Assembly (NCBI GenBank): GCA_002104905.1 | Contig: MCFE01000565.1 | Span: 1 to 57,387 of the forward strand | DNA: 57,387 bases | DNA from: Basidiobolus meristosporus CBS 931.73 | Taxonomy: Eukaryota; Fungi; Basidiobolomycota | Reading direction: 5' to 3' | Part shown: positions 4,650 through 57,387 of the stretch, piece after piece | How the letters are laid out: every line of letters begins with the position of its first letter | Numbering within the stretch: position 1 is the first letter of the stretch | Made by a program: the position numbers and the translations under genes | Notes under the pieces: generated by a model | Seen by the model: only the letters and a program-made list of their open reading frames with translations | What the model was told of the DNA's origin: nothing | The model's database searches: none

Positions 4650-4988
4650 TGTTGTAAGAGTCTTAGAGATATTGGAAGAACAAGTAGGTTGTGTGGTTTT
4701 CACTTAATGATTTATTGAATGTGAAAGTAGTATTTATACTTTTACTTGGTCTTGGCATTGCAAACACATAGAGTAGGTTAAGAAAGGTCCCAGGCACATG
4801 TGTGCAAAGTTTGGGGCTGTTTGAACAACTTTGAGAATTTTCATGTTCTGTGTACCTGGTATTTTGGTGAAAATATTTTAAGTAAATCCCAACAAGGATT
4901 TTGGTCAGTATTCTATAGGATTTGAAGGTAATGATCTAAGTGACCAAGTTAGGTGAATATTTAGGTGGAATTACAAATTTTTACAACA
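4650..4988 (-). repeat. Copia 5' LTR of the degenerate copy
   Basis: tgttgtaagag...ttacaaca, same family as the other LTRs, adjacent to the gag start. Confidence 0.9.
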
Positions 4989-5029
4989 GTTGCTTGCCAG
5001 TATCCACTTAAAATATTATAATCAGAGCA

Positions 5030-5365
5030 ACAGACACAAAGAACACAAATTTTTGCAAAGTTGTTTAAGCAGCCCAAGACTTGCACACTTGTTCTTGGGA
5101 CCTTCCTAAATATTTGTACAGGTTTGTTTTGTCAAGGCTATGTAGCAGTATATATACTACTTGTATATTCAATAAGTTACTGATTGAATACCATACATCT
5201 TACTTCCCACAGAATATGAGCCCCAAGCTTATTCTACATGCTTGCTTTGCCAAGACCATGTCAAAGTATAAATACCACTTTGACATTCAAGAAATGATCA
5301 AGTGAAAACTACAAAATCTACTTGTTCACCCAATCACTTCCAATATCTCCAAAACTCCTACATCA
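5030..5365 (+). repeat. Diverged copia-family LTR remnant in the opposite orientation
   Basis: Contains reverse complements of LTR blocks (cttgcacacttgttcttgggaccttcc; aatctacttgttcacccaatcacttccaatatctcc). Boundaries approximate. Confidence 0.6.
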
Positions 5366-7909: not shown

Positions 7910-10900
7910 GTCCGTCCATAGAAAATGCCACCCAGGGGAACCACCCCCGTCGGCAGAGATCGTTGATCAGACCGGAACGCCGGCCTACGTACCGAAGATT
8001 CCCCCAACGGGAGGAACCAACCTTTGACGAGAACGCCGACCGTCGAGATATCCTTGGTAGAAGCGACAGCTACTCACTACCGAAAAAGCCCAAGAAGATC
8101 ATGCTGATGGCGGAGACGAAACAATGCCCCTCCTGCTGGATGATCTTCTCCAAAATAGCTACCATCTACGCCCCATCCCCACTGCTGGTGTGCTGTGGTA
8201 CGTAAGGACGTTGTCCCGGTCTCTCTTGTCAACCCATTCATTCTAGTTTGCTCCAGGTATGAGAACTCCAGAGATCCGGCAGGCCTGGAGAGAGAAGATG
8301 GCCCTTTGTACCATCATCTTCTTTCTCTGTATCGTGGTCGGGTTCTTGACCTTTGGGTTCCAGCAGGTGCTGTGCGGCTTCGACAATGTGGGCCGCGTGA
8401 AGCAAGGAACCATGAGCATGTCTGACGGGTCCCTGTACGGTAAGGCACTGAGGTTGGATGGATTGAACCATCCTGCGGCCGCCGGGATTCCCACCGGAGG
8501 CAGTGTTGTTCCGCTCGCTGGAGGAAGGGACATATCTTTCATGTTTCAGAATGTGAACGGTCGGTGTAAGGGGGTTCTCGGCCTCACATCCGGCGCGGAC
8601 AGTAATGGGAATGTCATCAACTACTTTCCCTGCATTGTCCGTGGCACCAACACCACCTTGGATCCCTTGGCCGACCCCGAGAAAGCGGGATGCCATTCCT
8701 CCGCACTGGCCAGAGACACCCTGAAGCGCCTCCAATTCAACGGCGATATCTATTACGACTGGAGTGATCTCAAGTCAAAGCAAAGAGCCATGGTGGTGTA
8801 CAACGGGCACGTGTTGGATTTCGATCTGGTTTCGTGGCTGGTACCTGGAATCCAAGCACCCCCCATCTTTTACCAGCTCATGGATCCCAACTCGCCGTAC
8901 CGCGGGACCGACGTCACGTACCTTCTGAATAGCTACTACAAGGCTGAGGCAGACTGCGCGATGGACATCCTGAAGGTGGGTGTGCTTGACACGACCAGCA
9001 TGGGATGCATCATCTCCAACGTGGTTCTCTACGTATCCCTCATTGTCATTCTTGGGGTGGTGTTGACCAAGTTCTTCCTCGCCGTCTTCTTCGGCTGGGT
9101 GTTAAGCTGGCGCCTTGGCTCGTTCCGTGAGGAAACGTACGAGGAGCGTATGAAGCGGCTGGAAGCGATCGAACAGTGGAGTGAAAATCCCAACAACCTG
9201 GCCATCGCCTCGACTAGATCGAATGGCACCGCGATTCCTCACAAATCGAGCACCGGCTTCCTGCCAACCACGAGTCGCTACTCCTCCCCCGCCATGATCG
9301 CCGAATACCATAGCCGAAGGAACCCCAGTCAGCCCAGCCCCCTGTCCTCCGAAAAAACCAAGATCAGCCTTAACTCAGCCTCGGCCAACTCTCTGGCCGC
9401 ACAGACCCGATCTGGCTCCACCCCACCCGATTCCCCACGCACGCTCTCCCGCCGCTCGTCACACAGCTCGGCCACCGCCATCTCCAACATCCATACACCA
9501 CCCACACCACCACCCGTTTCCTTCCAGCCGTTCAACTTCCGATTGGCCCACACCATCATGCTGGTCACTTGTTATTCTGAAGGGGCGGAGGGGATGCGCA
9601 CCACGCTTGATTCGTTGGCCATCACGGACTACCCACAGTCGCACAAGCTAATCCTGGTGATCGCGGATGGCATCATCACCGGCAGCGGGAACGACATGTC
9701 CACCCCGGACATCTGTCTGTCGATGATGAAGGACTTCGTGATCTCGCCCGAGCACGTCCAGCCCTACTCCTACGTCGCCATCGCCGATGGCTCGAAGCGG
9801 CACAACATGGCCAAGGTGTACGCGGGCTGCTACAAATACGACGACAACACGGTTCCCCTGGAGAAACAGCAACGGGTCCCGATCATCTTGATCTCGAAGT
9901 GCGGGACCCCGGAGGAGGCGAACACCCCCAAGCCGGGGAACCGGGGCAAGCGCGACAGTCAGATCATCCTGATGTCCTTCTTGCAGCACGTGATGTTCGA
10001 TGACCGGATGACCGAGATGGAGTACGAGCTGTTCAATGCCGTCTGGAGCACCACTGGCGTGAGTGCCGATCAATTCGAGATCGTCCTCATGGTCGACGCC
10101 GACACGAAGGTCTACCCAGACTCGGTGACCCGTATGGTGTCCTGCATGGTGCGGGATCCCCAGATCATGGGCCTCTGCGGGGAGACCAAGATCGCCAACA
10201 AGAAGGATAGCTGGGTGTCGATGATCCAGGTGTTCGAGTACTACATCTCGCACCACCAGAGCAAGGCGTTCGAATCGGTCTTCGGTGGAGTGACCTGTCT
10301 GCCTGGGTGCTTCTGCATGTACAGGATCAAGGCCCCCAAGGGATTCAACGGGCTGTGGGTCCCGGTCCTGGCCAGCCCCGACATCGTGGAGCATTACTCG
10401 GAGAATGTGGTGGACACGCTGCACAAGAAGAACCTCTACCTCCTCGGGGAGGATCGGTTCCTCACCACCCTGATGCTGCGAACCTTCCCCAAGCGCAAGA
10501 TGGTCTTCGTGCCCCAAGCGGTCTGCAAGACCGTGGTCCCCGATTCATTCCAGGTTCTTCTGTCCCAGCGTCGCCGCTGGATCAACTCCACCGTACACAA
10601 CCTCCTGGAGCTGGTGCTGATCCGCGATCTCTGCGGGACGTTCTGCTTCTCCATGCAGTTCGTGGTGTTCATGGAGCTGGTGGGCACCACGGTGCTGCCC
10701 GCGGCCATTTGCTTCACCATCTACCTTATAGTCATCTCATTCATCGTCACCCCGGTCCCGGTGATCCCATTGATGCTGCTGGCGATTATCCTGGGCTTGC
10801 CCGCCGTGCTCATCCTCATGACAACCCGAAAGCTGGTGTACGTGGGCTGGATGCTCATTTACCTTGTATCCCTCCCAGTGTGGAATCTTATCCTCCCGAT

Positions 10901-41473: not shown

Positions 41474-41641
41474 TGTTGGGAAAATTCAAAATTCCACCTA
41501 AATACTCACCTAACTGAGTCACTTAGATCATTACCTTCAAATCCTAGAGAATACTGACCAAATTCAATAAGTCATTGAGTGAAATCATATAATCTACTTG
41601 TTCTCCCAATCACCTCCAATATCTCCAAGACTCTTACAACA
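41474..41641 (+). repeat. Internally deleted copia LTR in the opposite orientation
   Basis: Reverse complement of both LTR ends, joined with the middle missing. Confidence 0.75.
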
Positions 41642-42660
41642 GCTTCTTTGATAGTTTCACAGGTAGCTATTTACTCAGCCTCTGTGGTGCACAGTGCTAT
41701 AGTTGGTTGCTTTCCTGAGTACCATGAAATCACTTATCTACAACAAAGGAAGATGTATCCTGTGGTGGATCTTCTGCCTTCTAAATTTTTCACTCAATTT
41801 GCATCAGAGTATCACACAAAACTCTTTTCTCAGACCCTATATGTGCACCTTATCCAGATATCAGCAGTCCCTGTTAAATATTTAAATCCGCTGTACTGAA
41901 GAATATGGTCAGATTCTTAACTCTGTTGTAAGAGTCTTGGAGATATTGGAAGTGATTTGGGAGGACAAGTAGGTTGTGTGGTTTTCACTTAATGATTTAT
42001 TGAATGTGAAAGTAGTATTTATACTTTTACCTGGTCTTGGCATTACAAACACGTCGAATAGGTTAAGGAAGGTCCGAACAACATGTGTGCAAAGTTTGGG
42101 GCTGTTTGGATAACTTTGAGAATTTTCATGTTCTGGGTACCTGGTATTTTGGTGAAAATATTCTAAGTAAATCCCAACAAGGAATTTGGTCAGTAATCTC
42201 TAGGATTTGAGGGTAATGATCTAAGTGACTAAGTTAGGTGAATATTTAGGTGGAATTACAAATTTTTACAACAAACTCTGATTGGGTTGCCTGACCACTC
42301 CTGCTGAATACAAGATATCTGAGTTTGTTCCTTGCAGGCAATATGTCAAACTACCAACTATAGACTGTCAAGGACAGTCCAGGCTCTAAGATGGCACTAA
42401 GTTCACTTGATTTGATTCATTTTTAACCAAGTTAAGGGCAGTCTTGATTGGGGTAGCAATCAGTTTATATTCTGCATTTAGACCACATTTAGTATTTCTT
42501 GAATATATTGGACAGACTCAAGGTGGTGGTCCAAATACTTGTGTCTATAGAGCATTGTATCCTTAAGTAGTAGCTGAGCTCTCATGTATCAGACATCTTG
42601 AATTCCTTAAATAGGTGGGATTTATTCACCTTCAGTGCTTTTTGGTTAATGGTGACTATA
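41642..42660 (-). pseudogene. Old, decayed copia RT/RNase H fragment interrupted by a solo LTR
   Basis: Recognisable similarity to 46700-47330 of the intact element, with many stops. Confidence 0.7.
41924..42273 (-). repeat. Copia solo LTR (350 bp)
   Basis: TG...CA, 5-bp TSD AACTC (41919-41923 and 42274-42278). Confidence 0.93.
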
Positions 42661-42662
42661 AT

Positions 42663-42790
42663 TATTGTAAGAGTTTTAATGATATTGAAAGTGATTGAGA
42701 TATCAAGTAGATTATGTTGTTTACACATAACTGTTTATTGATAGTCAATATAATATTTATACTTGTACATCATCTAGGCAGAATACATAG
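42663..42790 (-). repeat. Diverged LTR fragment cut off by the first TTAG(G)n junction
   Basis: ttgtaagagtttt...gaaagtgattgagatatcaagtagattatg resembles the LTR start and stops abruptly at 42790. Confidence 0.6.
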
Positions 42791-42833
42791 TTAGGGGGGG
42801 GGGAGACAGTCACCAACAGGTGAAATCTCTAAT
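42791..42833 (-). mobile_element. Telomeric retroelement type B, about 40-bp 3'-end stub
   Basis: ttag(g)n-agacagtcaccaacaggtgaaatct, matching the 3' ends at 54324 and 57117. Confidence 0.85.
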
Positions 42834-42997
42834 TTAGGGGAGGGAAAGTCACTAAGTTGATGAAATCTTTATTTGAGTCAAGAACTAATCTAAGTACAAA
42901 TAAAGAAGCCAATTAAGAGGTCTAGAACCTCTCTAATAAGTAATCTAATTTATGTTTTGTTTCATCTCTAATGTTTGTTTCAATAAAGTAAAGCTCA

Positions 42998-45972
42998 TCA
43001 GGGGTAAATATGAAATTCAAGGGTTTTGGAGGGAAGTCCAAATTGTAGATGTTTCTGATCAATATAATCCAAGACTGGAGCCCAGCCTGGGATTAGGTGT
43101 AGTAGGAAAGGTGTGTGGACTTGTAAGTAGCTCTGCCACATAGATCCTAGATGGTCCTGAGCCAGTAGTCTTGGTTTCTCTGCTTTTTGAAGTTTTGAAG
43201 CAAGCTCTGTTACTACAGCAGAGCCAACCAGGGTGTGCCAGCAAGAAGATTTCAGGGAGGAGTTAGATTTAAGCCACTGTTTGATGGAGGGGTTATGTGA
43301 TTTCTGAAGTTGACTAGGAAGGAAGCACAAAGATAGACCATTTGGATTTGGTATGGGTAGAACCCAAAGGCTCCATTAGTTGCATGGATATAGGGAGACA
43401 CCAAAAGATAAGGTACCAAGGATCTGATACACTGATGGAGAAATTTATCCAGGCGGTGAAGTTCTCTGGAGGTTAGGGGTATAATGTGGAGACCAAATTC
43501 AAGTATGAGCAGTACATACTGCTTCAGAAGTATAGGGATCTTTTGAATTGGAGTGTCTGGAGTGACTACTACCAGAAGCTTTTTGAGAGGCTGTTGGGCA
43601 AGACAGATCCTATTTTTCAGGTGGAGCTTTGAGTCAATCCCATGTTGACAAAACGGCAGACCTAGATATATTGCAGTTTGTTGTGGCAGAATGCTAGTGT
43701 TCTGTATAGTTGTAGTGCACCCAATTGGGACTGTCTTGGAAATTGAGAGTGAGAGGTTGTTGGCAGCCAAGTACTTCTCAATGATGGCAGTGTCTGCTAT
43801 GGGATTAGGAGTAGCAATCTTGATATCATCCGCATAGAGAGTTAGTAGTGGATAGGGAGAGTCTGGTGAGGGGCCTTTTGGAAATAAAGGAAAGTTGAGT
43901 AGGAATATCACAAATAGTAAGGGACCTAGTACAGATCCTTGGACTACTCCATTTGGAACCTCATAAGTCTCTGATGTGCAACTTGGATGCAAAATTTTGG
44001 CTGAGTTCTCACAAAATAGAGAACATACAAGAAGGTTCATTGGTAGTGTGGTAACTGCTAATAGCTTTCTCCAAAGCAGAGCTCTGTCCACAGAGTCAAA
44101 GGCTTTAGTAATGTCAAACAGAATGGTTGGCAATGAGAATTGAAGTGAATGATCATGGCTTAGCACTACAGCCATATCCAAGGAGAGTTTGGGCAAGAAG
44201 CCAAACTGAGAAGGATGGAATGGATATAGTTGAGATTGTAAGGATCTTGCTATTATAAGCTCAAAGATTTTCTGGCAGGTTGGTAGGAGTGAAACTGGCC
44301 GGTAAGAACCTGGAAGTGAGTGTTTCCCCTTCCCTTTGTATAAGGGTGTTACATTTGCCTGTGACCAGGCCTTTGGGGTAGTCAATTGTTGCGCACAGAT
44401 AGAGTAGAATGGGATAAGTAAGTGACTCATTTTGGAGTAGCACACCCAGAGTAGATTGTAGGTAATCAAGTCATGTCCAGGTGCAGTATTTGCAGGACGC
44501 TTCTTTAAAATTTTCTCCAGAAGCTTTGCTGAAATCAAAATTGGAGATGTTGGACTGCTGGATATGTTACCAGTATGGTAGAAAGGAGGAGTGGGATGCA
44601 CAGATGAATCAAAGAATATAGGGGCCAGTTTGTCTGGTGATGATATACTCCTTGCTTGGGGTCTCATGGCTTTGTATACTCTTGATATGGACCTTGTGGT
44701 GGCATTCATATTTACTAAGGGCAAGGTATCCATGATATGAGCCCATAATCTAGTATGCTCAGTGATCTGTAGTGACTTGGAGTAGGAGATTGCGCTTTCC
44801 AGGAGGTTCTGTGTTTTTGGGTTAGGGAAACATAGGTAGCTGGAATTTAAGACAGAAATGATGGATTTCCATTTAAGTTGGTTTGCAGATGGCTTTTGGT
44901 AGGACTTGGTGGGTAGGGCTAGACAGCCAGTGATTATGATGAAATGCTGGTAAAATAGCCATAATGCATTTATATCATCACAAATCCATGTAGGTAAGCT
45001 GGGAAATGCATATTCGGTAAGCAAGGATAGGTAGTTGGCAAAGTCCTGTGTCTGTGATACTGAAGCTTTGGCTGGCAAGATTGTAAATGGCTGAAGAAGG
45101 GTGCCAATTGGTAAGGTTTTTCTGGCAGAAATGATAATATGTATTGGCTTGTGATCAGATTTCTTTAGTGACCCACAACTGATATCCTCTGGAATGCTTG
45201 TAACCTGGTGGATGTACTGTAAGGCAGCTGGAGTAGCTGTTACCCAGCCAACACAACATTGAGCTTGCTGAGTGTTTACAGTGACCAGATGGTTTTGTTG
45301 GAGGAACTTTGTAAAGTGCTCCTCTTGGGTTCTAAGTCTGGATGAAATAGTGGTGATATTTTCAGGGTGGGGAATATTTATATCTCCCACTACCATACAA
45401 GGGATTGATGAGCTGTTAATGAACTCTGATGTGGCTAAGAAAATTGCCAGTGTTATGGAGCTAGACAGAGATGGAGGGAGATAGATAGTAATGGCTACTA
45501 TAGCTGGAAGTGTTAGAGCATAGCAGTAATACTCATAGATGATGGATACATTTGCTGAGGGTGCAAGCTTAGAAGATGAAAGAGCAATGAGTGCCATTGA
45601 GTGAGCTGGAAATTTTGGGTGAGCAGATGAATATGCATTCAGTCTAGAGGGAAGTTTGGGCAACTCAACATCAATTAGTAGGAGCAAAGAATATTCCTTT
45701 TTCAGTAAGTTTTCTAATTCAGCTACTGTTGGAGTGATGGAGTTGAAATTGAGTAAGAGTATGTTCTGTAGTTGGGCAGACTCTGAGGTTGCCTGTTCCT
45801 GCTGAAACTCTTGCACTGCCCTTTGTAAATTTCCAGAATTATTCCACAACTCTTCAAATGGAGCTTGTGTAATGTCTTTCAGGATTCTAATTGCTTCCTC
45901 TTTCAAGAAGTAGGCCACATCATAGGTTGGAGCCTGTTTCTTAATGGCAGCAAAGAATGCCATAATTGCCAT
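42998..45972 (-). pseudogene. LINE-type ORF2 of type A: degenerate APE-like domain plus RT; C-terminus frameshifted into 42998-43330
   Basis: IYLPP, VVGDIN and KSDHKPI (APE-like); SYRPVSLL, QFGF, FDITKAFDSV, GVVQGSVLGPLLF and LYADD (non-LTR RT). Confidence 0.88.
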
Positions 45973-46042
45973 GTGAGCTGGGGCTTGTTGAATATTCCTG
46001 GCTCAGTGTCCATTGACTCTGGTGGAATGATTGTGAATTTGG

Positions 46043-49000
46043 TGTTGTAAGAGTCTTGGAGATATTGGAAGTGATTTGGAGAACAAGTAGATTATGTGGT
46101 TTTCACTTAATGATTTATTGAATGTAAAAGTAGTATTTATACTTTTACATGGTCTTGGCATTACAAACACGTAGAATAGGTTAAGGAAGGTCCCAAGAAC
46201 ATGTGTGCAAAGTTTGGGGCTGTTTGGACAACTTTGAGAATTTTCATGTTCTGGGTACCTGGTATTTTGGTGAAAATATTCTAAGTAAATCCCGACAAGG
46301 AATTTGGTCAGTATTCTCTAGGATTTGAAGGTGATGATCTAAGTGACTAAGTTAGGTGAATATTTAGGTGGAAAATACGAATTTTTACAACACTCCCACT
46401 CAGCTAAATGTTCATACTGACTAGTCCTAATTTTGACCTAAGATATTCAAACTTGTCTCTAGCTAATGGTTTGGTAAATATGTCTGCAATCATTTCATCT
46501 GTAGGACAGTAAACTAAGCTAACTAAGTTATTCTCTATAGCTTCACGTATGAAATGATGTCTAATATCTATGTGCTTGGTTCTAGCATGAAAAGTTGGAT
46601 TTCTACCTAATTGTATACATCCTTGATTATCTTGAAATAAAGTAATAGGCGTTTTTTGACATAGGCCTAAATCTGTAAAGAGCTTTCTTAACCACATTGC
46701 TTCTTTTGTAGCTTCACAGGCTGCCATATACTCTGCCTCTGTAGTAGAAAGTGCTACGGTTGGTTGCTTTCTTGAATTCCATGAAATGGCTCCTTTACAG
46801 TAAAGAAAGGTATATCCTGTGGTGGATCTTCTGTCTTCTAAATTTCGTCCCCAATCAGCATCAGAGTATCCCACAAGATCCTGTTCTGAATCCTTATAAG
46901 TGTATCTTAAGCAGATATCAGCAGTTCCTTTTAGGTATCTAAAAATCCGCTTAACTGCTGCAATATGATCAGATCCATAATTCTGATTATGTTGGCTGAC
47001 AACTCCCACTGAATATGAGATATCTGGACGTGTTCCAAGCATGATATACATCAGACTGCCGACCATAGATTGATAAGAAAAGTCAGGGCTTTCAGATGGC
47101 ACCAAGCTCTCTTGATTTGGTTGAGTTTTGACCAAGTTAAGGTTTGTCTCCATTGGGGTAGCTGCCGGTTTACAGTCTTCCATTTTGTACTTCTTTAGTA
47201 TATCTTGAATATACTTGGATTGGCTTAGGGTAATAGTCTGGGTACTTCTGTCTATGGAGAACTTAATCCCTAAGTAGTAACTGAGTTCTCCTAGATTGGA
47301 CATCTTGAACTCCTTAGATAGGCTGGATTTAGTCTCTTCCAATGTTTCTAGGTTATTGGTGGCTATAATAAGATCATCCACATATAGAGCTAATAGAACT
47401 GGATTTGCTCTATCTGGCTTATAGTATATACTATAGTCAGCATTACTCCTTTTGAAACTCAAAGATTCCAAATAAGAATCTATCTTGCAATTCCAGGCTC
47501 TCGGTGATTGTTTGAGACCATATAGTGACTTTTTAAGCTTGCAGACCAAATGGGGGTTATCTTGGTCAACAAAACCATCAGGCTGGTCCATATACACGTC
47601 CTCATCAAGTTCTCCATTCAAAAATGCAGTTTTTACATCCATTTGATGAATAAAAAACTTATATTTGGCTGCAATAGCCAATATTAATCTGATGGAATTA
47701 AACTTGGCTACCGGTGCAAAGGTCTCAGTATAGTCAAGTCCTTTTGTTTGAGAGTATCCTTTGGCTACAAGTCTTGCTTTGTATCTTTCAATTGTACCAT
47801 CAGCCTTGTATTTTGTCTTGAAGACCCATCTGCATCCAATTGATTTTCGGTTGATTGGTAATTTGACTAAGTCCCAAGTTTGATTTTCCATCAGGGCCTG
47901 ATATTCCTCAGTCATTGCAGATCTCCAAAACTTCGTCTGAGGGCTATTTAGGGCCTCTTTTACAGTCTGGGGTTCATCAATATGGACTGAATAGGCATAG
48001 GCTAAGTTTGTACCCTCATTAATATAGTAATTTGGGCTATTTCTTGTCCAATTTGATCTCCGGGCATTTGATACTGGAATGATCACTTCTGGGATATTCC
48101 TGGGCACTGATTCTGGCTGAACCACGGTTGTAGAGTCCTCTGGAGTGAAAAAAGTTTCATTGTTTTGCTCTGATTCAATCCTGACAATTGGTGGACTTGA
48201 GATCAAATTTTCGTCATCATCTGATGTCATTTTTTGTGAAAATTTTGAATTTTCATCAAACAACACATCCCTGGACTTGATCAGCTTCTTTGCTTCGGTA
48301 TTGTAGAGTCTGTATGCCTTACTCTCATTGCAGTAGCCCAAAAATATGCATTTTACACTTTTTGGCTCAAATTTTGACTGATTTCCGGCCAGTTTTTTGG
48401 CATATGCTGTACACCCAAATATTCTTAGATGTTCTGCACTTGGTCTGTGTCCATACCATGCTTCAAATGGAGTAGAATCACAAAGTATTCTGTTATAACT
48501 TCTATTTTTAAGATATACAGCAGTGGCAACTGATTCCGCCCAAAAATCATAGGATAATTTTTGATCATGGATCATAGATCTTGCCATATCAATTATTGAT
48601 CTGTTAGCTCTTTCTGCTACTCCATTTTGCTGTGGGGAGTATGGTACAGTAGTCTCTTGCTTTATCCCATGAATTTTGCAGAAGTGGATGAAGAGTTTTG
48701 AGGTATATTCTCCACCATTGTCAGAGCGTATTTTCTTGATTTTTTCACCAGTTTCTCTCTCCACCATGGCTTTAAACTCCCTGAGCTTAGACAGAGCTTC
48801 TTCCTTTCTCTCCATGAAGTAGACCCATGTGTATCTTGTATAATCATCAATAAAAGTGATTAAATACTTCATCCCGCCTAAGGATAAATTTTGCATAGGT
48901 CCACACAGATCTGAGTGAATTAGATCTAATTTTTTCTTAGTTTTGATTAACCCAGAGCTCTTGAACGGTTGTCTGGCTTGTTTCCCATATATGCAGGCTT

Positions 49001-50729
49001 CACAGTGCTCCAAAATAGCTGGGGGATCAATTTTCACTCCAGAAATTAGCTGATCTTTGATCATTTTACGCAAATAATCAAAATTGATGTGTCCAAATCT
49101 CCTGTGCCAAAGCATTGGTGTTTCTTCATTTAAGTTACTTATATTGGCTTCCAGATATGATGGAATATAAGTCAACTTGTATAGGTTCTGATCTCTGATG
49201 CCCGAAGCAATATGGGCACCATTTTGATCAGTGATCCTGCATCCAGAATTGTCAAAACTGAAACTGAGTCCTTCTGCTGTGGCCTTGCTTACAGAGAGTA
49301 GGTTCTTGGCTATTTCTGGTACATAGAGTACTTCTTTAAAGGTCAGTGTATGGCTTCCTTCACTGCTTCTAAGGTTTACTTGGATAGTTCCTTCTCCCAC
49401 TGCTTCAAGTGTTCTATCGTCACCCATGAAAACCTTCTTAATTGGAATTTCTTGATATTGGGTAAAAAGTTCTTTTTGGTGTGTAAAGTGTTGAGAAGCT
49501 CCAGAGTCAATATACCACGTCTGAGAATCCTTGTTTGTGGTCATATTTAGTGCAGATATGAATAGTCTATCTTCAGTTGTTACAGCATTTCCATATTCAG
49601 GCTTCTTTTGCTGATAATCTCTCTTTTTGAAACATCGGTCTGATGTGTGTCCTTTCCTTTTGCAGTAGTTGCAAAATAGGTTGCTGTTGCCTTTGTAGGG
49701 TCTTGGGTACCTCCTTTGTTGGTTATCATTGCTTATTAAAGCATTTTCTTCTTCCTTCTTATTGGCGCTTGATTTTCTTAATTCTTCATCCAGGAGCCTT
49801 CCATATACGTAATTTAAGGTCAAATCTTCAGTTCTGGACTCTAGGGCTGATACAAGGCCCTGAAACTCGTCTGTCAGGCTATTCAGGATGGTAACTATCA
49901 CATCCTCATCAGTAGTTGGTACGCCCACAGATTCCATCTCATCTACCAGCAGGGTAATTCTGTTAATTAGATTTTTCATTTCTTCTCCTGGCAGCATCTT
50001 TGTAGTAAAGAATTTTCTTCTCAGATACATTTTCTTGGCAGCTGAACATGACTGGTAGGTGTCTTCTAATGCTTTCCAGGCATTCTTTGCCGTTTTTGCT
50101 CTTGAGCATTGAATTAGCAATTTGTCCTTGACATTAAGGCAAATGCAGTTAAAGGCACTTTGTTCTTTCTTCTGGTACTTCAAGGCTTCCTCTCCCACGT
50201 TTTTAGGAGGGCATTCTTCTCCCATGACAATATCCCAAAGGCCTCTTTCTTGTAGCAGCATCTTCATCTTCACCTTCCACACTTGGTAGTTAGATCCATC
50301 CAACTTTTCAGCAGAGGGAAAAATTCCAGTAATAGCAGTAGTAGACATTGCAGAGAGTGACAGCTCGGGGCTCATAACCTGTTGTAAGAGTCTTGGAGAT
50401 ATTGGAAGTGATTTGGAGAACAAGTAGATTATGTGGTTTTCACTTAATGATTTATTGAATGTAAAAGTAGTATTTATACTTTTACATGGTCTTGGCATTA
50501 CAAACACGTAGAATAGGTTAAGGAAGGTCCCAAGAACATGTGTGCAAAGTTTGGGGCTGTTTGGACAACTTTGAGAATTTTCATGTTCTGGGTACCTGGT
50601 ATTTTGGTGAAAATATTCTAAGTAAATCCCAACAAGGAATTTGGTCAGTAATCTCTAGGATTTGAAGGTGATGATCTAAGTGACTAAGTTAGGTGAATAT
50701 TTAGGTGGAAAATACAAATTTTTACAACA
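46043..50729 (-). mobile_element. Full-length, apparently intact Ty1/copia LTR retrotransposon (4687 bp)
   Basis: 350-bp LTRs at 46043-46392 and 50380-50729 (3 differences), TSD TTTGG, PBS GGTTATGAGCCC, PPT GAGTGGGAG, uninterrupted gag-pol. Confidence 0.97.
46404..50375 (-). CDS. Copia gag-pol polyprotein (about 1323 aa)
   Basis: CCHC knuckle CNYCKRKGHTSDRC, protease WYIDSGAS, integrase SDLCGP/SDNGGEY/QQNGVAER, RT MDVKTAFLNG/YVDD, RNase H GYSDADW, in copia domain order. Confidence 0.96.
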   Translation of the reverse strand: MSPELSLSAMSTTAITGIFPSAEKLDGSNYQVWKVKMKMLLQERGLWDIVMGEECPPKNVGEEALKYQKKEQSAFNCICLNVKDKLLIQCSRAKTAKNAWKALEDTYQSCSAAKKMYLRRKFFTTKMLPGEEMKNLINRITLLVDEMESVGVPTTDEDVIVTILNSLTDEFQGLVSALESRTEDLTLNYVYGRLLDEELRKSSANKKEEENALISNDNQQRRYPRPYKGNSNLFCNYCKRKGHTSDRCFKKRDYQQKKPEYGNAVTTEDRLFISALNMTTNKDSQTWYIDSGASQHFTHQKELFTQYQEIPIKKVFMGDDRTLEAVGEGTIQVNLRSSEGSHTLTFKEVLYVPEIAKNLLSVSKATAEGLSFSFDNSGCRITDQNGAHIASGIRDQNLYKLTYIPSYLEANISNLNEETPMLWHRRFGHINFDYLRKMIKDQLISGVKIDPPAILEHCEACIYGKQARQPFKSSGLIKTKKKLDLIHSDLCGPMQNLSLGGMKYLITFIDDYTRYTWVYFMERKEEALSKLREFKAMVERETGEKIKKIRSDNGGEYTSKLFIHFCKIHGIKQETTVPYSPQQNGVAERANRSIIDMARSMIHDQKLSYDFWAESVATAVYLKNRSYNRILCDSTPFEAWYGHRPSAEHLRIFGCTAYAKKLAGNQSKFEPKSVKCIFLGYCNESKAYRLYNTEAKKLIKSRDVLFDENSKFSQKMTSDDDENLISSPPIVRIESEQNNETFFTPEDSTTVVQPESVPRNIPEVIIPVSNARRSNWTRNSPNYYINEGTNLAYAYSVHIDEPQTVKEALNSPQTKFWRSAMTEEYQALMENQTWDLVKLPINRKSIGCRWVFKTKYKADGTIERYKARLVAKGYSQTKGLDYTETFAPVAKFNSIRLILAIAAKYKFFIHQMDVKTAFLNGELDEDVYMDQPDGFVDQDNPHLVCKLKKSLYGLKQSPRAWNCKIDSYLESLSFKRSNADYSIYYKPDRANPVLLALYVDDLIIATNNLETLEETKSSLSKEFKMSNLGELSYYLGIKFSIDRSTQTITLSQSKYIQDILKKYKMEDCKPAATPMETNLNLVKTQPNQESLVPSESPDFSYQSMVGSLMYIMLGTRPDISYSVGVVSQHNQNYGSDHIAAVKRIFRYLKGTADICLRYTYKDSEQDLVGYSDADWGRNLEDRRSTTGYTFLYCKGAISWNSRKQPTVALSTTEAEYMAACEATKEAMWLRKLFTDLGLCQKTPITLFQDNQGCIQLGRNPTFHARTKHIDIRHHFIREAIENNLVSLVYCPTDEMIADIFTKPLARDKFEYLRSKLGLVSMNI

Positions 50730-52076
50730 TTTGGTAGGCACCCAGTTTAGATTTTTTGCCAGATACTTATTCAATGCAGTGGAGAAGTTTCTGTCTACAA
50801 TCATTTCTAGGATCTTTCCTCTTCTCCAAGCTAGGTTAACAATTTTTGAAGTGTCAATATTTAGAGAGCGGAATGTACGTCTGATGTTTGATATAGTAGT
50901 CCATGGAACATTGGCAAAGTATAGCAAGGACCAATTCTGGAGCCGAGGTAAGTTTGCTGGAGGCCTATAGGTAGACTTCCTGGCAGGTTGTGTGGTAGGC
51001 TTTAGTGTTTCCAAGGTAGCAAGTTGTGGTTGAGACTTTTTGGAATTATGTATGACTTTGGAAAGAATTCTGCCAGCAACTGTGTCAGGAATGTTAGTAC
51101 TCATTGATGGTGAAGGGCCTGGCTCCTGGTACTCCTTTTGTAGAATACTTGAGTATGTCTCTTTTTGTTTTCCTTTATCCAATGTGCTATGCCTTGGAAT
51201 GGGATTTTGGGGAATAGAGACTTCAGGTATCAACTCTGGGGTCTGGTGACTGTCCAACATTGTTGCTTGAGCTTCCAGCTTTTCCTCTAAGATTTGAACT
51301 CTCTGCTTAAGCTCATCATTTGACACTATAAGTGTTGCATTGTTTGGAGCCAGGTCAGGTGTTGAGTTATGAAGGCAGGTTGAGCAGCGTTCTAACTCCT
51401 TTGTTTGGTCATCCAACTTTTCTTCTAAGGTTTGAACCCTCAATTTGAGTGCACCATTTGAGGTTAGAAGCTCCAAGTTATCAGCCTGCAACTTCTTTAG
51501 ATCCCTAAATATCTCAAATATCTGTGCCTGCAAGTCTTTAGCAGTGATATTTCTGATGGGTACTATTTCCTCTAGGGGCTCTTCTTGAGCCAGGTGATCA
51601 TTGGGACTTGAGCATTCTACTGGAGGAGTTGCTGGAATCTCCTCAATGTCTGACAAAACTTCTTCACTTGCAGCATCAATTGTATGATTATCCTGAGTAG
51701 CAGCAACAGTCTCAAGCTCACAAGGACCAGTTGAAGTAAAACATCTCTTAGGTGGGACTATCTCAAGAGGCTTGGGTGGGACTTTTGCTTTGAATGGTGA
51801 GGTACTAGTATCAAGAATTGGGACTGGGACAGAAGCTAGGGTGTCTATTTCAGCAGCAGTTGCTGTAGAGCTATGGGGCTCTGACTGGCCAGTTTTTTGG
51901 TCTTTGCCTTCACTCCTGCTACCAACTGGTCAAGACCACAAATCTTTGTACAGGCCTTGCATTGGACCTGCTTAAGCTTATTCTTGCCAGCACAGCCATT
52001 GAGCTTCCATTTGCCTCTGATACCACAGGCAGTGCAGTCAAGTCTTGAATACCATCTTCTGAAGAGAGTCAGATCC
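50730..52076 (-). pseudogene. ORF1 of the type A element: C4 zinc-ribbon, P/S/T-rich linker, coiled coil, C-terminal domain; frameshift near 51890-51930
   Basis: CTACGIRGKWKLNG...VQCKAC (51845-52096 frame), heptad-like LKLRVQTLEEKL repeats, WSLLYF...IRRTFRSLNID. Confidence 0.65.
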
Positions 52077-52385
52077 TTAGGGGGGGAGACAGTCACCGAC
52101 AGGTGAAATCTTTATTTCAGTTGAAACAAAGAAGCCAGCGCTACTGTTGTAGCTTTGATACAAGAGTGTGTAGCTGAGGGGAATTTGTAGTTAAGTTAAT
52201 AAGAAGTGATGATAGTTCTTCAGTGCTCAAGACACTGTTGAGTGGGAAGGGGGGTAGCAAGAGAGGTAAGAATGACTTGTGAACAACATTAATGAGGGGA
52301 ATGTGATAAGGATTGATATTCATCATAAAGGGAGTGTGCTGCTGCAGATATTGCTGCCAAAGGTCTGTCAAGTACTTCAGGTAGG
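52077..52385 (-). mobile_element. Telomeric retroelement type B, about 0.3-kb 3' fragment, followed by de novo TTAGGG repeats
   Basis: Matches 54324-54630 and the 3' end of 54702-57116; breaks at gtagg into gttagggttaggg. Confidence 0.9.
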
Positions 52386-52392
52386 GTTAGGG

Positions 52393-52740
52393 TTAGGGGG
52401 GAGGGAAAGTCACCAAGGTAGGTGAAATCTTTATTTGATTGCAGACAAGTCTAACTACAAATAAAGAAGCCAGCTGGGAATAGAGGATTCCCAAAGTAAA
52501 CACCAAGTTGAATATGAATAAATCTAAGCTAAAGTTAAGGCAGTATCCCAGAGTACACTGGAGTTCAGGTTCATGGGGGAGTGAAGTAGATAAGCTTGAG
52601 AGATATAATAATCTTTAAGGAAGTGGGTAACAGCAGGTGAAGGTGAGTTTTTGATAAGTGAAGTGAATCTTGAGAGCAGAGATTCCTCTAATGAGAAGGC
52701 CTTATAAACTGGAGAATCAGGAAACTCTTTAAAGGCATGG
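52393..52740 (-). mobile_element. Telomeric retroelement type C, 3' fragment
   Basis: Same 3' module with a distinct sequence; about 70 open codons on the - strand ending near 52523, possibly an ORF2 tail. Confidence 0.7.
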
Positions 52741-53437
52741 TGTTGTATCCAAGAGAAAGTGTAATAAAACTCTTGAATGGTTTAACTGAACCAAAGGGAC
52801 AATTAAGCGCAGAATCTTAGAATTGTCAGAGAGTGGCGGAAATATTAGCAGAAAGATTCTGATCTAATATTGGTCTTGGATATAGCTGGGTTGGCTATAA
52901 AGGCAATGATATTTGTTAGCTAGGCAGGCTAGGCTTGGTGTTCTTTGGAGTGCTAGATATACTAGGCTTGGATAGAAACTAGAACGGAATTGTTGGATTC
53001 GTATTTTTGCTGAGACAGAATCTTAATTTCATTGAGACACACACTAAACCAAAAGGTTCAGTACACTTTATTTACACTTTTCTGATCAAGTTGAATTAGT
53101 AAGCGCCAAGGGACTGGATTGATTGAAATCAATTTGGGTGTTCATAGGTGCTTAAGATAAATGAAAATTACATCATCAATCAACTGATGTCTTGGCAACT
53201 GCACAGTGGTTGGATAGATCTCAGATGACTAATCACCTGGGAAGGCTTGGCAGATAGGTTGATAACGTGATGACCATTTGAAAATAGATCAGGTGTGATA
53301 GCTAAAAATAGATTCTGAGGTGGGATCAAATAAACTGTAACTGGGATTTGTTATGTTTGGGTTAGGGAAAATCAGTTAGGGTACTAGATTTTCAAACGGA
53401 GTAAAATTGGCAAAGTTTTAAATGTTGATGCACAACA
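52741..53437 (-). repeat. Ty3/gypsy 3' LTR (697 bp)
   Basis: TGTTGT...ACAACA termini; purine tract GGAAGGAAG immediately upstream on the - strand. Confidence 0.75.
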
Positions 53438-53795
53438 TCACTTCCTTCCGGAAGAGGAGTTTTTTGATACCTTCTGGGTTCCTCTGCGGCTCCAATACTG
53501 ATTGATAATGGCAACATCATCAAAGTTGGTGTAAGGTTCCCAGGTGTTGTGTTTGGCATCATAGCCTTTCCACTTGACTAAATAAAGGCAATTTGGTTCT
53601 TCTCCATCATGGTCCAAAATAGCTTCAACTTCATAGGATTCTGAAGTTACTGGGTCTTGAGAAATAAGTTTGAGTGAGGAAGGTGGAAAGTTTTTGGGTA
53701 GCAGTGCTCCAGTGTTATCTTGAAGTACATAAGATCCTCCAGTAGTGCGTCTGACAACCTTGAATGGTCCTTCATACTTGGGGTCAAGCTTAGAT
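53438..53795 (-). pseudogene. Chromovirus integrase C-terminus with chromodomain, truncated by a TTAG(G)n junction
   Basis: KLDPKYEGPFKVV (GPY/F motif) and YEVEAILDH...YLVKWKGY...NTWEP (chromodomain). Confidence 0.9.
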
Positions 53796-54323
53796 TTAGG
53801 GGGGAGGAAAGTCACCAAGTGGTGAAATCTTTATTTACTTATGACAAGTATCTAAAGAAGCCAAGTTAATCTGAAGTTATTCCTAGAAAGCTAGGTCTGA
53901 GAGATATCTCCCTGGTAAGCCAGGTCTGAGAGTTGAGAAGCTGAGTGGTACTATATTTCCTAGTTAGCTAGGTGTGAGAGAGGTTTCCTGGAAAGCCAGG
54001 CCTGAGAAGTGAGAATCTGAATATATCTGAGCTAAGTTATACTGGTTTGCGGTAGCTGAATTGTGGCCGGAATGGCCAGTAGACTGGGGGAACTGAGATG
54101 AATTTCTGGGCGATCACTGGCCAAATTTACTAGGCAAATCTGGCCAATTAGCATTTCAAGGATTTCAGCCAATCAGAGCCTTTACTTTGCCCGATGGTTG
54201 ATCAAGCCATCTCCCAATGAGCACACATTAATTTATTAATCAAATTTTGTTGGATCCAGGATTTGAACCCACAACCATGGGTATGGAAGGGTTAGGGATA
54301 ACCACAAGGCTAAGTGTTCTTGG
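53796..54323 (-). mobile_element. Type D: non-coding 528-bp SINE-like element with a tRNA-type internal promoter and the shared telomeric 3' module
   Basis: A-box-like TAGCCTTGTGG (54312-54302), B box GGTTCAAATCC (54269-54259), tRNA-like spacing, no listed ORF, LINE-like 3' stem-loops plus C-run. Confidence 0.7.
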
Positions 54324-54701
54324 TTAGGGGGGAGACAGTCACCAACAGGTGAAATCTTTATTTCAGTTGAAACAAAGAAGCCAGCGCTACTGTTGTAGCT
54401 TTGATACAAGAGTGTGTAGCTGAGGGGAATTTGTAGGTAAGTTAATAAGAAGTGATGATAGTTCTTCAGTGCTCAAGACACTGTTCAGTGGGAAGGGGGG
54501 TAGCAAGAGAGGTAAGAATGACTTGTGAACAACATTAATGAGGGGAATGTGATAAGGATTGATATTCATCATAAAGGGAGTGTGCTGCTGCAGATATTGC
54601 TGCCAAAGGTCTGTCAAGTACTTCAGGTAGGCCAGCTTGGGTTTTTCTGACTGCAGAATAAATTCAGCAAACTTCTTGACTTCAGGATCTCCAAGTATAG
54701 T
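54324..54701 (-). mobile_element. Telomeric retroelement type B, about 0.38-kb 3' fragment
   Basis: Near-identical to the 3' end of 54702-57116. Confidence 0.92.
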
Positions 54702-57116
54702 TTAGGGGGGGGGGAGACAGTTACCAACAGGTGAAATCTTTATTTCAGTTGAAACAAAGAAGCCAGCGCTACTGTTGTAGCTTTGATACAAGAGTGTGTA
54801 GCTGAGGGGAATTTGTAGGTAAGTTAATAAGAAGTGATGCTAGTTCTTCAGTGCTAAACACACTGTTCAATGGGAAGGGGGGTAGCAAGAGAGGTAAGAA
54901 TGACTTGTGAACAACATTAATGAGGGGAATGTGATAAGGATTGATATTCATCATAAAGGGAGTGTGCTGCTGCAGATATTGCTGCCAAAGGTCTGTCAAG
55001 TACTTCAGGTAGGCCAGCTTGGGTTTTTCTGACTGCAGAATAAATTCAGCAAACTTCTTGACTTCAGGATCTCCAAGTATAGTTCTCCAGCAGGAGCCAG
55101 GTGTTGTGTGGTGTGTTCTCTTCCAGGCCTTAATCATTGGGTTCTTGCAGTTGTGAAGTCTGAGGTATAATCTGGTTCTAAGGTAGAGAAGTCTAATCTT
55201 ATAGGGCATAAACCCAAAAGCACCAAGAATAGCATGTCTGTAGGGGCATTCAGGCAAATGAGGCACCAAGGAGGTAATGCACCATACTGCAAACTTGTCA
55301 AGCTTAGTGCAGTCTCTAGAAGTAAGAGAGAGAAGTGCTAAGCCAAATTCCAGGACAGGGAAGACAAACTGCTTGAGTAGAAGGAGGCAGCTGGGAGCTG
55401 AAGTTGTAGGAGGAGTAACAGCCAGTAGCTTGTGGAGTGCCTGTCTTGCCAGGATAATTCTCTTCTTCAGGTGTGCTCCAGAGTCTAGTCCAGTAGGAAG
55501 GAAAGGAAAGCCAAGATATGTAGCAGAAACCTGAGCAGGTAGAGTGGAGTTCTCTAAGGTGATGGGAGAGCCCAAAGGTACTGTCTTTGCAATGGAAAGC
55601 TGGAGATTATTCTTCTGCAGATACTGGTGGATGGTCTGGGAGTCTTGTTGCACATTGGAGGAGGATATTCTGATGTCATCAGCAAAGAGAGTAACCAGGC
55701 AGTCAGCTGAGAGTCTTGGGAAATCATTCAGGAAGATGGCAAACAGTATAGGACCAAGCACAGAGCCTTGAACCACTCCATTAGGAACTGAGAACACAGC
55801 TGATTGCTCACTTGGGTGCAGAATTCTTGCTTGTGGATCCAGAAACAGAGACCTGACAAGGAGGGTGAGAGAGGTAGTGGAGAAGCATTGTAACTTGGAC
55901 CAAAGCAGATTTCTGTCAACTGAATCAAAGGCCTTAGTAATATCAAACAGAACAGAGGGATACTTGCACTGGAGAGAGTGATCTTGGCTAAGTATGACTG
56001 CATATTCCAAGGAGAGGCCAGAAACAAAGCCAAACTGTGCAGGATGAAACTTGAGGGAGTCAGAGTAGAGCTCCTGAGCAAGCAGAAGCTCAAACACCTT
56101 TCTGCAGGTGGGCAGCAGAGATATTGGCCTGTAGGAGCTAGGATCCAGGTGCTTTCCTTTACCCTTGTACAGTGGCAGAACATTTGCAAAGGACCATTTC
56201 TCAGGAGTAGAAAGCTGGGCTGAGCATTGCTGAAACAGTGGAAGCAGAAGTGCAGACATGGCCTTGGTACTAGTCTTCAGAAGCTCATAGGAGATTGTGT
56301 CCACACCTGGAGCAGTAGAGTTGGGAAGCCTCTTGAGCACATTATGGATTCTCCTTTGATCAAGTGCAAGTGGGATGGGCAGAGTCTTGAAGTCAGGATG
56401 AAAGCCAGGAGTTGAGTACTGCTTTGTAGAGAAGAAGATGTTAGCCAGCTGTTCTGTTGAAGGTAACATCCTGGAAGGGGGCCTCATTGCCCTGTAGAGT
56501 CTTGATACTGTTCTTGTTATAGAGTTGGAAGATTGCAGAGGCAAGGAACTCATAATATGATCCCAGAGCTGAGTATGCAGAGTGTGGTGAATTGCCCTGG
56601 AGTGGTGTATTGCTGTCAGGAGGAGTTTCTCTGTTTTTGGGTTAGGGAAACTCAGGTAGCTTTGTTGCAGGGCTGAAACAATGGATTCCCATTTTCTTGA
56701 GGTAACAGCAGTAGTCTTGCATGGCAGTGAGAGGGAGGCAGACACCAGAATCAGATGCTTCACAAAGAGCCAGGCATAGTTAAGATCATCTGGCAGAGAA
56801 AGTAGCAAACTGGCAAGCTTCAAGTAGTTCCCAAAGTCTTTCTTCTGATTCTTGGTAGCTTTGTGGGTGAGCACAGTAAGTTTTGGCAGCTTCTTCTTCA
56901 AAACTGGTTGCATAGAAAGGGACCAGGCTGGGTGGTCAGAGGCTCTGAAGGATCCTAGCTCAGCTCCAGAGAATTGCTTAACTTCATTCACAAAGTAGAG
57001 GGCAGCAGCAGAAGGGCAGATCCAGTCAACACATCTTTTCTCAGATTGAGCACCTAGTGCTAGCAGATGGCTTTCTCTCAGGAAGTTCAGTAGGAATGTA
57101 GACCTTGGCTTCATTC
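54702..57116 (-). mobile_element. Telomeric non-LTR retrotransposon type B, 2.4 kb, 5'-truncated within the APE domain
   Basis: Open ORF 54769-57114 and the shared 3' module; truncated by the next junction at 57117. Confidence 0.92.
54769..57114 (-). CDS. Type B ORF2 remnant (APE C-terminal part plus complete RT), 781 codons open
   Basis: RCVDWIC and ASDHPAW; SYRPISLL, QFGF, FDITKAFDSV, GVVQGSVLGPILF, LFADD. Confidence 0.9.
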   Translation of the reverse strand: MKPRSTFLLNFLRESHLLALGAQSEKRCVDWICPSAAALYFVNEVKQFSGAELGSFRASDHPAWSLSMQPVLKKKLPKLTVLTHKATKNQKKDFGNYLKLASLLLSLPDDLNYAWLFVKHLILVSASLSLPCKTTAVTSRKWESIVSALQQSYLSFPNPKTEKLLLTAIHHSRAIHHTLHTQLWDHIMSSLPLQSSNSITRTVSRLYRAMRPPSRMLPSTEQLANIFFSTKQYSTPGFHPDFKTLPIPLALDQRRIHNVLKRLPNSTAPGVDTISYELLKTSTKAMSALLLPLFQQCSAQLSTPEKWSFANVLPLYKGKGKHLDPSSYRPISLLPTCRKVFELLLAQELYSDSLKFHPAQFGFVSGLSLEYAVILSQDHSLQCKYPSVLFDITKAFDSVDRNLLWSKLQCFSTTSLTLLVRSLFLDPQARILHPSEQSAVFSVPNGVVQGSVLGPILFAIFLNDFPRLSADCLVTLFADDIRISSSNVQQDSQTIHQYLQKNNLQLSIAKTVPLGSPITLENSTLPAQVSATYLGFPFLPTGLDSGAHLKKRIILARQALHKLLAVTPPTTSAPSCLLLLKQFVFPVLEFGLALLSLTSRDCTKLDKFAVWCITSLVPHLPECPYRHAILGAFGFMPYKIRLLYLRTRLYLRLHNCKNPMIKAWKRTHHTTPGSCWRTILGDPEVKKFAEFILQSEKPKLAYLKYLTDLWQQYLQQHTPFMMNINPYHIPLINVVHKSFLPLLLPPFPLNSVFSTEELASLLINLPTNSPQLHTLVSKLQQ

Positions 57117-57179
57117 TTAGGGGGAGACAGTCACCAACAGGTGAAATCTTTATTTCAGTTGAAACAAAGAAGCCAACGC
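57117..57179 (-). mobile_element. Telomeric retroelement type B, about 60-bp 3' stub directly capped by the telomere
   Basis: ttagggggagacagtcacc...gaagccaacgc then (TTAGGG)n. Confidence 0.9.
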
Positions 57180-57221
57180 TTAGGGTTAGGGTTAGGGCTA
57201 GGGTTAGGGTTAGGGTTAGGG

Positions 57222-57281
<60 letters not shown>

Positions 57282-57387
57282 GGTTAGGGTTAGGGTTAGG
57301 GTTAGGGTTAGGGTTAGGGTTAGGGTTAGGGTTAGGGTTAGGGTTAGGGTTAGGGTTAGGGTTAGGGTTAGGGTTAGGGTTAGGGTT
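57180..57387 (+). repeat. Telomere (TTAGGG)n, about 208 bp, with proximal variants (CTAGGG, 2x TTTAGGG)
   Basis: Continuous repeat to the end of the window. Confidence 0.99.

Follow-up and report, generated by a model that had tools for sequence, protein, structure and literature searches.

How does a fungal chromosome come to end in a stack of retroelement fragments that all point the same way? The question is raised by a contig of Basidiobolus meristosporus CBS 931.73, analysed here over its whole length of 57,387 nt (the window) and belonging to an assembly of 89.5 Mb in 1366 contigs. A chitinase ORF (open reading frame) in the window matches a protein of this strain with 100% identity. 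Read directly, the outermost 14.6 kb of this contig (42791-57387) proved to be a one-way stack of copies of long and short interspersed nuclear elements (LINEs and SINEs) under a TTAGGG cap. The best explanation, judging from the sequence features described below, is that a telomere-specialised community of elements of the kind lacking long terminal repeats (non-LTR), made up of an autonomous LINE (LINE A), its relatives B and D and a SINE, builds the subterminal parts of the chromosome ends. We put at roughly 60% the probability that it does so by reverse transcription primed from uncapped chromosome 3′ ends, which telomerase would cap later.

Organisation of the array

All eight junctions in the window consist of TTA, a run of 4-10 G and the antisense 3′ end of a retroelement, which continues after the G-run as AGACAGTCACC, AGGGAAAGTCAC or AGGAAAGTCACC, three related sequences. 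A repeat search puts the eight into a single 8-copy family (D5). The minus strand encodes all retroelement ORFs of the window, which are thus antisense on the G strand, with element 3′ ends facing the chromosome interior and 5′ ends facing the telomere. Fragment sizes are ~39, 61, 307, 346, 378, 516-524, 2412 and ~4570 nt. From base to tip the array reads as follows (aa, amino acids; APE, apurinic/apyrimidinic endonuclease; RT, reverse transcriptase).

42791..42833, minus strand: array base, TTA and G10 on a truncated copia-type LTR relic, then a ~39-nt LINE A 3′ stub
42834..46042, minus strand: 3′ part of LINE B, with TTA and G4, the 3′ hairpin module and a 906-aa ORF (APE-like domain and RT)
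46043..50710, minus strand: complete copia LTR retrotransposon within LINE B, with 350-bp LTRs and a 1367-aa gag-pol
50711..52076, minus strand: 5′ part of LINE B, with an ORF1-like 326-aa frame; TTA joins its distal end to the next element
52077..52386, minus strand: LINE A fragment, TTA and G7 with the 3′-terminal 307 nt
52387..52741, minus strand: ~2.3 telomeric repeats, G6 and the 3′-terminal 346 nt of element D
52742..53795, minus strand: Ty3/gypsy fragment, 3′ LTR from its TG terminus and the end of the integrase chromodomain; telomere side cut off
53796..54323, minus strand: full-length SINE C, ~524 nt, with a LINE-type 3′ hairpin module and box A/B-like 5′ motifs
54324..54701, minus strand: LINE A fragment, TTA and G6 with the 3′-terminal 378 nt
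54702..57116, minus strand: LINE A fragment, TTA and G10 with 2412 nt, including an open 781-aa piece of ORF2 (RT)
57117..57179, minus strand: LINE A stub, TTA and G5 with ~61 nt of the 3′ end (stub letters 57120-57179)
57180..57387, plus strand: terminal telomere (TTAGGG)n with rare CTAGGG and TTTAGGG variants, ~209 bp to the contig end

The original prediction, made from the letters of this stretch, had described eight junctions of this kind, a last stub passing straight into the telomere, polar head-to-tail order with intact proximal 3′ ends and variable 5′ truncation, no poly(A) tails or target-site duplications, and non-LTR RTs with an APE-like N-terminus in an early-diverging fungus. On direct reading all eight junctions were found, TTAGGG repeats run from 57180 to the contig end, and the polarity and truncation pattern were confirmed. 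Poly(A) and poly(T) are absent from all eight junctions, and comparison of successive junctions in the window made no target-site duplication visible beyond the shared TTA. The motifs VVQGSVLGP and FADD/YADD are present, and the host, Basidiobolus, is indeed an early-diverging fungus. The array is not, however, wholly of LINE type as had been supposed, since it also holds the copia element at 46043-50710 and the Ty3/gypsy fragment at 52742-53795.

The copia element, which interrupts a LINE B of ~4.57 kb overall, is an ordinary insertion that stands outside the end-addition system. In the 906-aa ORF of this LINE B one catalytic D is replaced by G. For the gypsy fragment we considered a LINE-made retrocopy of gypsy RNA and rejected it; the piece begins at the LTR TG terminus at four different host sites, which is what an integrase-made insertion would do. 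Beneath the array, 41474-42790 is a mosaic of copia LTR relics in both orientations. About 2.5 kb thus separate the array from the unique chromosome arm, whose last gene-like ORF reaches to near 40.3 kb.

Arrays at other chromosome ends

Twenty further loci around matches to the LINE ORF2 (L001-L020) make up, with the window, the 21 ends and 69 junctions on which our junction statistics are based. All 20 lie near contig ends, most within ~10 kb and one (L020) up to ~17 kb away. Eleven of them reach a terminal TTAGGG tract of 150-240 bp, and the same 150-240 bp of TTAGGG is carried by 12 of 12 complete ends when the window is included. Across the genome a junction 19-mer has 95 forward and 9 reverse matches, all of the latter less than 7 kb from a contig start, as against 0 for a reversed control, which excludes chance. 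A telomere 30-mer has 7145 forward and 73 reverse matches, a strand bias from which it follows that almost every telomere-bearing contig has its telomere at the right-hand end. Telomeres terminate many contigs in the 100-350 kb range, and one contig of ~193 kb (C890) has element junctions near both ends. The pattern of telomeres and contigs may point to a very large number of small chromosomes or to much redundancy among the end contigs.

Could the arrays have been created by chimeric long reads or by a mis-assembled repeat? Short unitigs from the same sample cannot bridge the element order of the window, and contig orientation is oddly uniform. Nevertheless the architecture is common to 21 loci, the junction types are present in the short-read unitigs, and in independent public assemblies relatives of these elements at 48-63% aa identity join their 3′ end to the next element likewise. 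We therefore give an assembly artefact hardly any credence.

Junctions carry very little telomeric sequence

TTA stands directly ahead of the G-run at 57 of the 69 junctions, and the G-run itself measures 3-12 nt with a mode of 6. Sequence in telomere phase before the G-run amounts to ≤9 nt in 63 of 69 cases and never exceeds 26 nt; the plurality class (15/69) has TTA alone, and 2-4 telomeric repeats precede the junction in 6/69. Insertion at random positions into tracts of 150-240 bp would produce the observed flanks with a binomial p of ~1e-69. Random entry into telomere tracts is therefore essentially impossible as the source of the junctions.

We located the last native base at the 50 junctions where the proximal element was identified. 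Here the non-native filler is a suffix of TTAGGGTTA, being A, TA, TTA, GTTA, GGTTA, GGGTTA or TTAGGGTTA itself. At 21 of these 50 junctions the native end overlaps the filler series by 1-4 nt of microhomology; at 57117, for example, the TT of TTA is native to the truncated LINE A. Since the TTA may thus belong in part to the truncated element, the pairing partner of the DNA end appears to be a short ...UAA(CCCUAA) tail lying beyond the C-run of the element RNA. From the junctions we infer that this RNA terminates in UAA or in a longer telomere-like tail. Longer fillers are irregular (TTAGGGG-TTA; TTAGGGGGAGA-GGGTTA) and look as if copying of the element tail had been broken off and then begun anew.

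A different origin of the same junctions is site-specific target-primed reverse transcription as in the TRAS and SART elements. An APE would nick the G strand of the telomere or of an existing junction, at TTAGGG(G) or immediately ahead of it (conceivable targets being TTAGGG or TTAGGGGG duplexes), arrays would grow by repeated insertion, and truncation and microhomology would arise as they do in ordinary target-primed reverse transcription. Insect telomere-specific LINEs work in this way (PMC4700185), and the 57 junctions with TTA ahead of the G-run, as well as the six that follow 2-4 telomeric repeats, agree with it. The predicted upstream tracts, however, should range over 0-240 bp (25-40 repeats) and not stay within 9 nt in 63 of 69 cases. 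Moreover, the proximal flank is often plain non-telomeric sequence, and a copy flanked on both sides by long telomere tracts was not seen. On balance we consider such a route rather unlikely, including each of its parts, namely the nick targets and the growth by repeated insertion.

Evidence for addition at the chromosome terminus

Judged by the junction statistics, addition at the terminus is more likely than insertion into telomere tracts, and the LTR elements caught up in the arrays bear on the same point. Eight pieces of such elements, three of them gypsy (window, L002, L014) and five copia (window, L013, L017, L019, L020), are truncated solely on their telomere side. The cut pieces join TTA-Gn-element or short repeats, and the missing remainder is never found farther out; in read unitigs the gypsy sequence of other copies runs on past 53796. 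An LTR element cannot 5′-truncate by its own mechanism, which implies that the chromosome end receded or broke at these places and was then extended.

Nowhere in the 21 loci does one LINE or SINE interrupt another, and fragments without an edge cut or interruption begin at the exact 3′ end, with a single exception (L002:679-1416). In 12 of 15 within-array pairs the proximal LINE A copy is less like the young reference than the distal one (p = 0.018), and basal LINE A stubs are 93-95% identical as compared with ~99% for outer copies. Repeated insertion of the TRAS/SART kind is at odds with these observations: the eight truncated LTR pieces never resume distally, splitting of one LINE or SINE by another is not found, and the older copies are proximal.

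Some truncated elements carry the TTAGGG cap directly, and telomerase would seem able to start straight on them. Exact full-length 5′ ends are found in 10 SINE and 3 LINE A copies. That full-length 5′ ends are common suggests that many truncations result from incomplete reverse transcription rather than erosion, and that some multi-element stacks arose by end-to-end template jumps. Short-read unitigs of the source sample contain hundreds of distinct joints between a truncation point and the 3′ module, with TTA-like letters between them. By inference, attachment may occur regardless of the terminal sequence, as a healing of receded or broken ends.

Arrays could also be spread by recombination (break-induced replication or unequal exchange, in the style of yeast Y′ elements or of alternative lengthening of telomeres), with retrotransposition as only a distant origin. 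A junction of SINE 5′ end, TTA and LINE A recurs in L011, L020, the window and L014, a 102-nt segment of the 5′ untranslated region (UTR) is tandemly duplicated in L010 and L015, and an inverted internal array in L020 shows that rearrangement occurs. Yet nearly all of the 69 junctions have their own truncation point and filler, with hundreds more distinct joints in the reads; copies start at the exact element 3′ end, and LINE A copies are ~99% identical with their frames open. The recurring junctions are themselves minimal (a full-length 5′ end plus TTA) and could be produced independently. Recombination as the main source of the arrays is thus very unlikely.

LINE A, its proteins and its relatives

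LINE A is ~4567 nt long (reference copy L011:2420-6986, minus strand) and comprises a 5′ UTR of ~200 nt, a 511-aa ORF1, one in-frame UGA and a 922-codon ORF2 frame. The 5′ UTR holds two telomeric repeats, AACCCTAACCCTAA in sense (L011:6822-6836), and in some copies its first ~102 nt have undergone one or two tandem duplications (L010:6924-7127, L015:6925-7027). ORF1 has a zinc-ribbon-like motif and a coiled coil, for both of which the Pfam signals are at noise level; its relatives in the protein Atlas form unnamed Mucoromycota and Zoopagomycota clusters. The RT of ORF2 is of LINE type (Pfam RVT_1, E 2.6e-25), its nearest solved proteins are L1 ORF2p (E 6e-13), and the motifs QGSVLGP and FADD are present. 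Pfam finds no domain in ORF2 other than the RT, and so a restriction-like endonuclease C-terminal to the RT is not seen.

With the N-terminal 235 residues of ORF2, phmmer found no match in the PDB and Pfam scores stayed under the cut-offs. The AlphaFold model of this region (mean predicted local distance difference test score, pLDDT, 86.8) adopts an AP-endonuclease fold, which in a fold search matches APE1, ExoIII and the TRAS1 and L1 endonucleases at E ~1e-9, TRAS1 endonuclease being among the best structural matches (template modelling score, TM, 0.66-0.70). The endonuclease residues N, Y, D-N, D and D-H are kept throughout the family, and the catalytic E is D in every member. The APE domains of family members share only 37-54% identity. 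From the model, the N-terminal APE domain of ORF2 is apparently functional. An intact fold with conserved catalytic residues in spite of such divergence, and the structural likeness to TRAS1 endonuclease, are the other points that speak for TRAS/SART-like insertion.

A lone UGA, with CUA or CUC after it, divides ORF1 from ORF2 without a change of frame (L011:5236-5256, minus strand; L021:2112-2122; L022:2669-2680), and no AUG precedes the endonuclease domain in ORF2 of LINE A. Both the GCC-UGA-CU(A/C) context and the ORF layout are conserved in relatives at 63% identity; in the LINE B of the window the stop codon is absent at the ORF1/ORF2 boundary. The conserved UGA layout and the lack of an AUG suggest that ORF2 is probably made by stop read-through as an ORF1-ORF2 fusion.

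In the genome, 58 of 58 scored ORF2 matches are 97-98% identical, 56 of them without an internal stop, and 55 of the 58 lie on the minus strand, opposite the telomere G strand. DNA copies of LINE A are ~99% identical to one another. Together with the open 922-codon frames this is the pattern expected of ongoing retrotransposition, and the LINE A family looks currently active.

An exhaustive search of 1.84 billion representative proteins returned only a small isolated family, with 5 representatives better than 1e-100; beyond the family the best RT-only match is at ~1e-51, and a single multi-stretch polyprotein match (9.5e-115) lies between. The RTs next in similarity, at ~30% identity, are those of unnamed or hemipteran proteins. 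Independent assemblies of other public runs yielded five relatives with 48-80% aa identity, whose contigs have the ORF1-UGA-ORF2 layout of LINE A. Their hairpin, C-run and TAA(CCC) abut the next element, which is in some cases 5′-truncated, and L023 is a head-to-tail tandem of full-length copies. The unrelated public samples with related LINEs, presumably other Basidiobolus, are the following.

L021: ERZ27274739
L022: ERR14127404
L023: ERR14042393
L024: ERR14042384
L025: ERR14656578
L026: ERR14042375

A shared 3′ module and a probable SINE partner

In the predicted fold of the LINE A RNA 3′ end two hairpins lie side by side, and after them comes a single-stranded tail of 15 nt terminating in C6-UAA (z = -3.5). 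The second hairpin and the C-run are common to at least five element types, SINE C among them. The 5′ terminus of the SINE C copy in the window was found again in 10 other full-length copies (L001-L020). Box A/B-like motifs were spotted by eye at this 5′ end, and neither ARAGORN nor Rfam (E up to 1) called a tRNA in SINE C. Given the shared module, SINE C is probably a non-autonomous partner that uses the LINE 3′ end. It seems confined to telomeric arrays, and a telomere-specific SINE would be unusual.

One further element type, E (L003:5632-6798), is joined after 4.5 telomeric repeats and lacks the G-run. It terminates in five to six 86-bp tandem repeats directly beneath the telomere.

A model for extension of receded ends

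In the mechanism that we propose, erosion or breakage would remove the telomere tract and the bare 3′ end would serve as primer. The exposed sequence could be any, whether truncated LINE, SINE, copia or gypsy, and would pair over 0-4 nt with the ...CnUAA(CCCUAA) tail of an element RNA held by the ORF2 protein through its 3′ hairpins. Reverse transcription would then add TTA, a slippage-prone G-run and the element itself, up to the RNA 5′ end or a premature stop. More elements could join likewise, or by end-to-end template jumping, until telomerase caps the end; the SINE would use the same enzyme as the LINE.

This differs in part from the original prediction, in which the C-run paired with a G-rich telomeric primer, an idea that does not agree with the ≤9 nt of telomere-phase sequence before most G-runs. 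Alternation of the RT with telomerase, also proposed there, is seen at the final cap only; seeds of 2-4 repeats precede 6 of the 69 junctions. That the RT extends the chromosome end is favoured by the junction statistics, while the mechanism is deduced from the junctions and the endonuclease looks intact.

Several points weigh against priming from bare ends. One to one-and-a-half telomerase repeats could yield the same 1-9-nt fillers, and microhomology at truncated 5′ ends is also expected of endonuclease-dependent insertion beside an existing junction. The APE domain is predicted to fold confidently, and the conservation of N, Y, D-N, D and D-H makes it apparently intact; an endonuclease step may therefore be used. 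The test of the age gradient is small, since its 15 pairs (p = 0.018) are not fully independent. The 21 ends were all picked via element matches, with 1630 first-look candidates lying outside the scored set. Finally, L020 (contig C781:52000-61999) holds an internal inverted array (locus 4352-9024), which could be an internalised or folded-back former chromosome end, or an assembly chimera.

The inverted array of L020 consists of 2.9 kb of LINE A, a SINE, a gypsy piece and an old LINE A stub, and lies base-to-base with a normal array (9274-10000) at a distance of ~250 bp; its outer end adjoins a copia element. A fold-back is also seen at the array base of L014 (1502-2577), where two gypsy LTR-region copies are inverted ~3 bp apart.

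Comparison with known telomeric retroelements

In its behaviour the Basidiobolus system is closest to HeT-A/TART/TAHRE of Drosophila and to Zepp of Chlorella. Zepp is likewise LINE-like, 5′-truncated and arranged in one orientation at the termini of a telomerase-positive host. Telomeric repeats are added onto truncated Zepp copies, and Zepp has been reported to restore the ends of new minichromosomes. It differs in having poly(A) tails, turned out later to be dispersed or centromeric in related algae, and belongs to a different kingdom; to our knowledge, no SINE partner or C-run/UAA tail has been described for it. TART and TAHRE keep an APE domain whose role at chromosome ends is unclear.

The Drosophila elements share with those described here polar, end-only arrays with the 3′ end proximal and variable 5′ truncation, attachment without a specific terminal sequence, and the combination of autonomous and non-autonomous partners (PMC5537684, PMC4700185). 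In Basidiobolus, however, TTAGGG caps are found on all complete ends examined, the junction is TTA and a G-run instead of oligo(A), and the place of the Gag-only element of Drosophila is taken by a short SINE with box A/B-like motifs.

TRAS and SART (Bombyx; R1 clade) and Tx1-1_ACar are also telomere-confined LINEs with APE and RT in hosts with telomeric repeats, the RT of such elements needs a 3′ UTR structure, and the RNA tail can pair with the target (PMC4700185, PMC10088271). With respect to the G strand, TRAS also lies the same way round as the Basidiobolus elements (PMC4700185, PMC10088271). The insect elements use one fixed nick site inside telomeric tracts, are mostly full length and carry poly(A) (PMC4700185), whereas the Basidiobolus copies are mostly 5′-truncated, lack poly(A) and adjoin non-telomeric ends via ≤9 nt of telomere-like sequence.

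Among fungi, MoTeR, FoTeR and Cnl1 are end-restricted non-LTR elements with short telomeric motifs at their junctions and 5′-truncated copies (PMC12857005, PMC8381367). They are CRE/SLACS-clade elements with a restriction-enzyme-like endonuclease on the C-terminal side of the RT and with 3-7 repeats at their 3′ ends (PMC12857005); the Basidiobolus family, in contrast, has an N-terminal APE fold, an ORF1, a C-run tail and usually ≤1.5 repeats. The endonuclease-deficient Penelope-like elements Athena and Coprina are terminus-restricted and have an RT primed from an exposed 3′ end with the aid of short telomere-like sequence in the RNA (PMC8557442, PMC4700185), but their RT is telomerase-like and an APE domain is lacking. 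Endonuclease-independent L1 insertion at dysfunctional telomeres is primed alike (PMC4700185), but is an opportunistic laboratory phenomenon and not the work of a specialised family.

Implications for chromosome ends in Basidiobolus

Telomere-specialised retrotransposons are central to ideas on the relationship between telomerase and retroelements. Well-documented cases are few, namely Drosophila HeT-A/TART/TAHRE, insect TRAS/SART, Giardia GilM/T, Zepp, the Penelope-like elements of rotifers and fungi, and MoTeR/FoTeR/Cnl1. Fungal APE-type LINEs are absent from a 2023 survey of telomeric retrotransposons (PMC10088271). Our literature search found no description of such a telomeric retroelement guild in Basidiobolus; the original prediction, too, was aware of none for APE-type LINEs in early-diverging fungi. 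The guild is real and telomere-specialised, looks active and is apparently undescribed, and would be the first of its APE-type LINE kind in fungi, in an early-diverging lineage.

Three features would be unusual: that ends without telomeric sequence are healed directly in a host with telomerase, that the RNA tail resembles a telomerase template, and that a SINE is dedicated to telomeres. Whether the elements prime from ends or use their endonuclease, and whether the host gains from them, can be tested at the bench, as Basidiobolus grows in culture and LINE A copies are young, numerous and intact. The finding also bears on assembly and annotation, since many contig ends of this genome consist of such arrays.

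More tentatively, two RT systems may act in series to maintain Basidiobolus ends, the LINE/SINE system extending them without an endonuclease and telomerase capping them. The elements would then carry a telomerase-RNA-like 3′ template (the C-run with UAA/CCCUAA) and might, as an equally tentative part of the same proposal, aid end maintenance instead of being mere parasites. If true, such two-system ends would stand as a natural halfway stage between telomeres made by telomerase and those that Drosophila builds from retrotransposons only.

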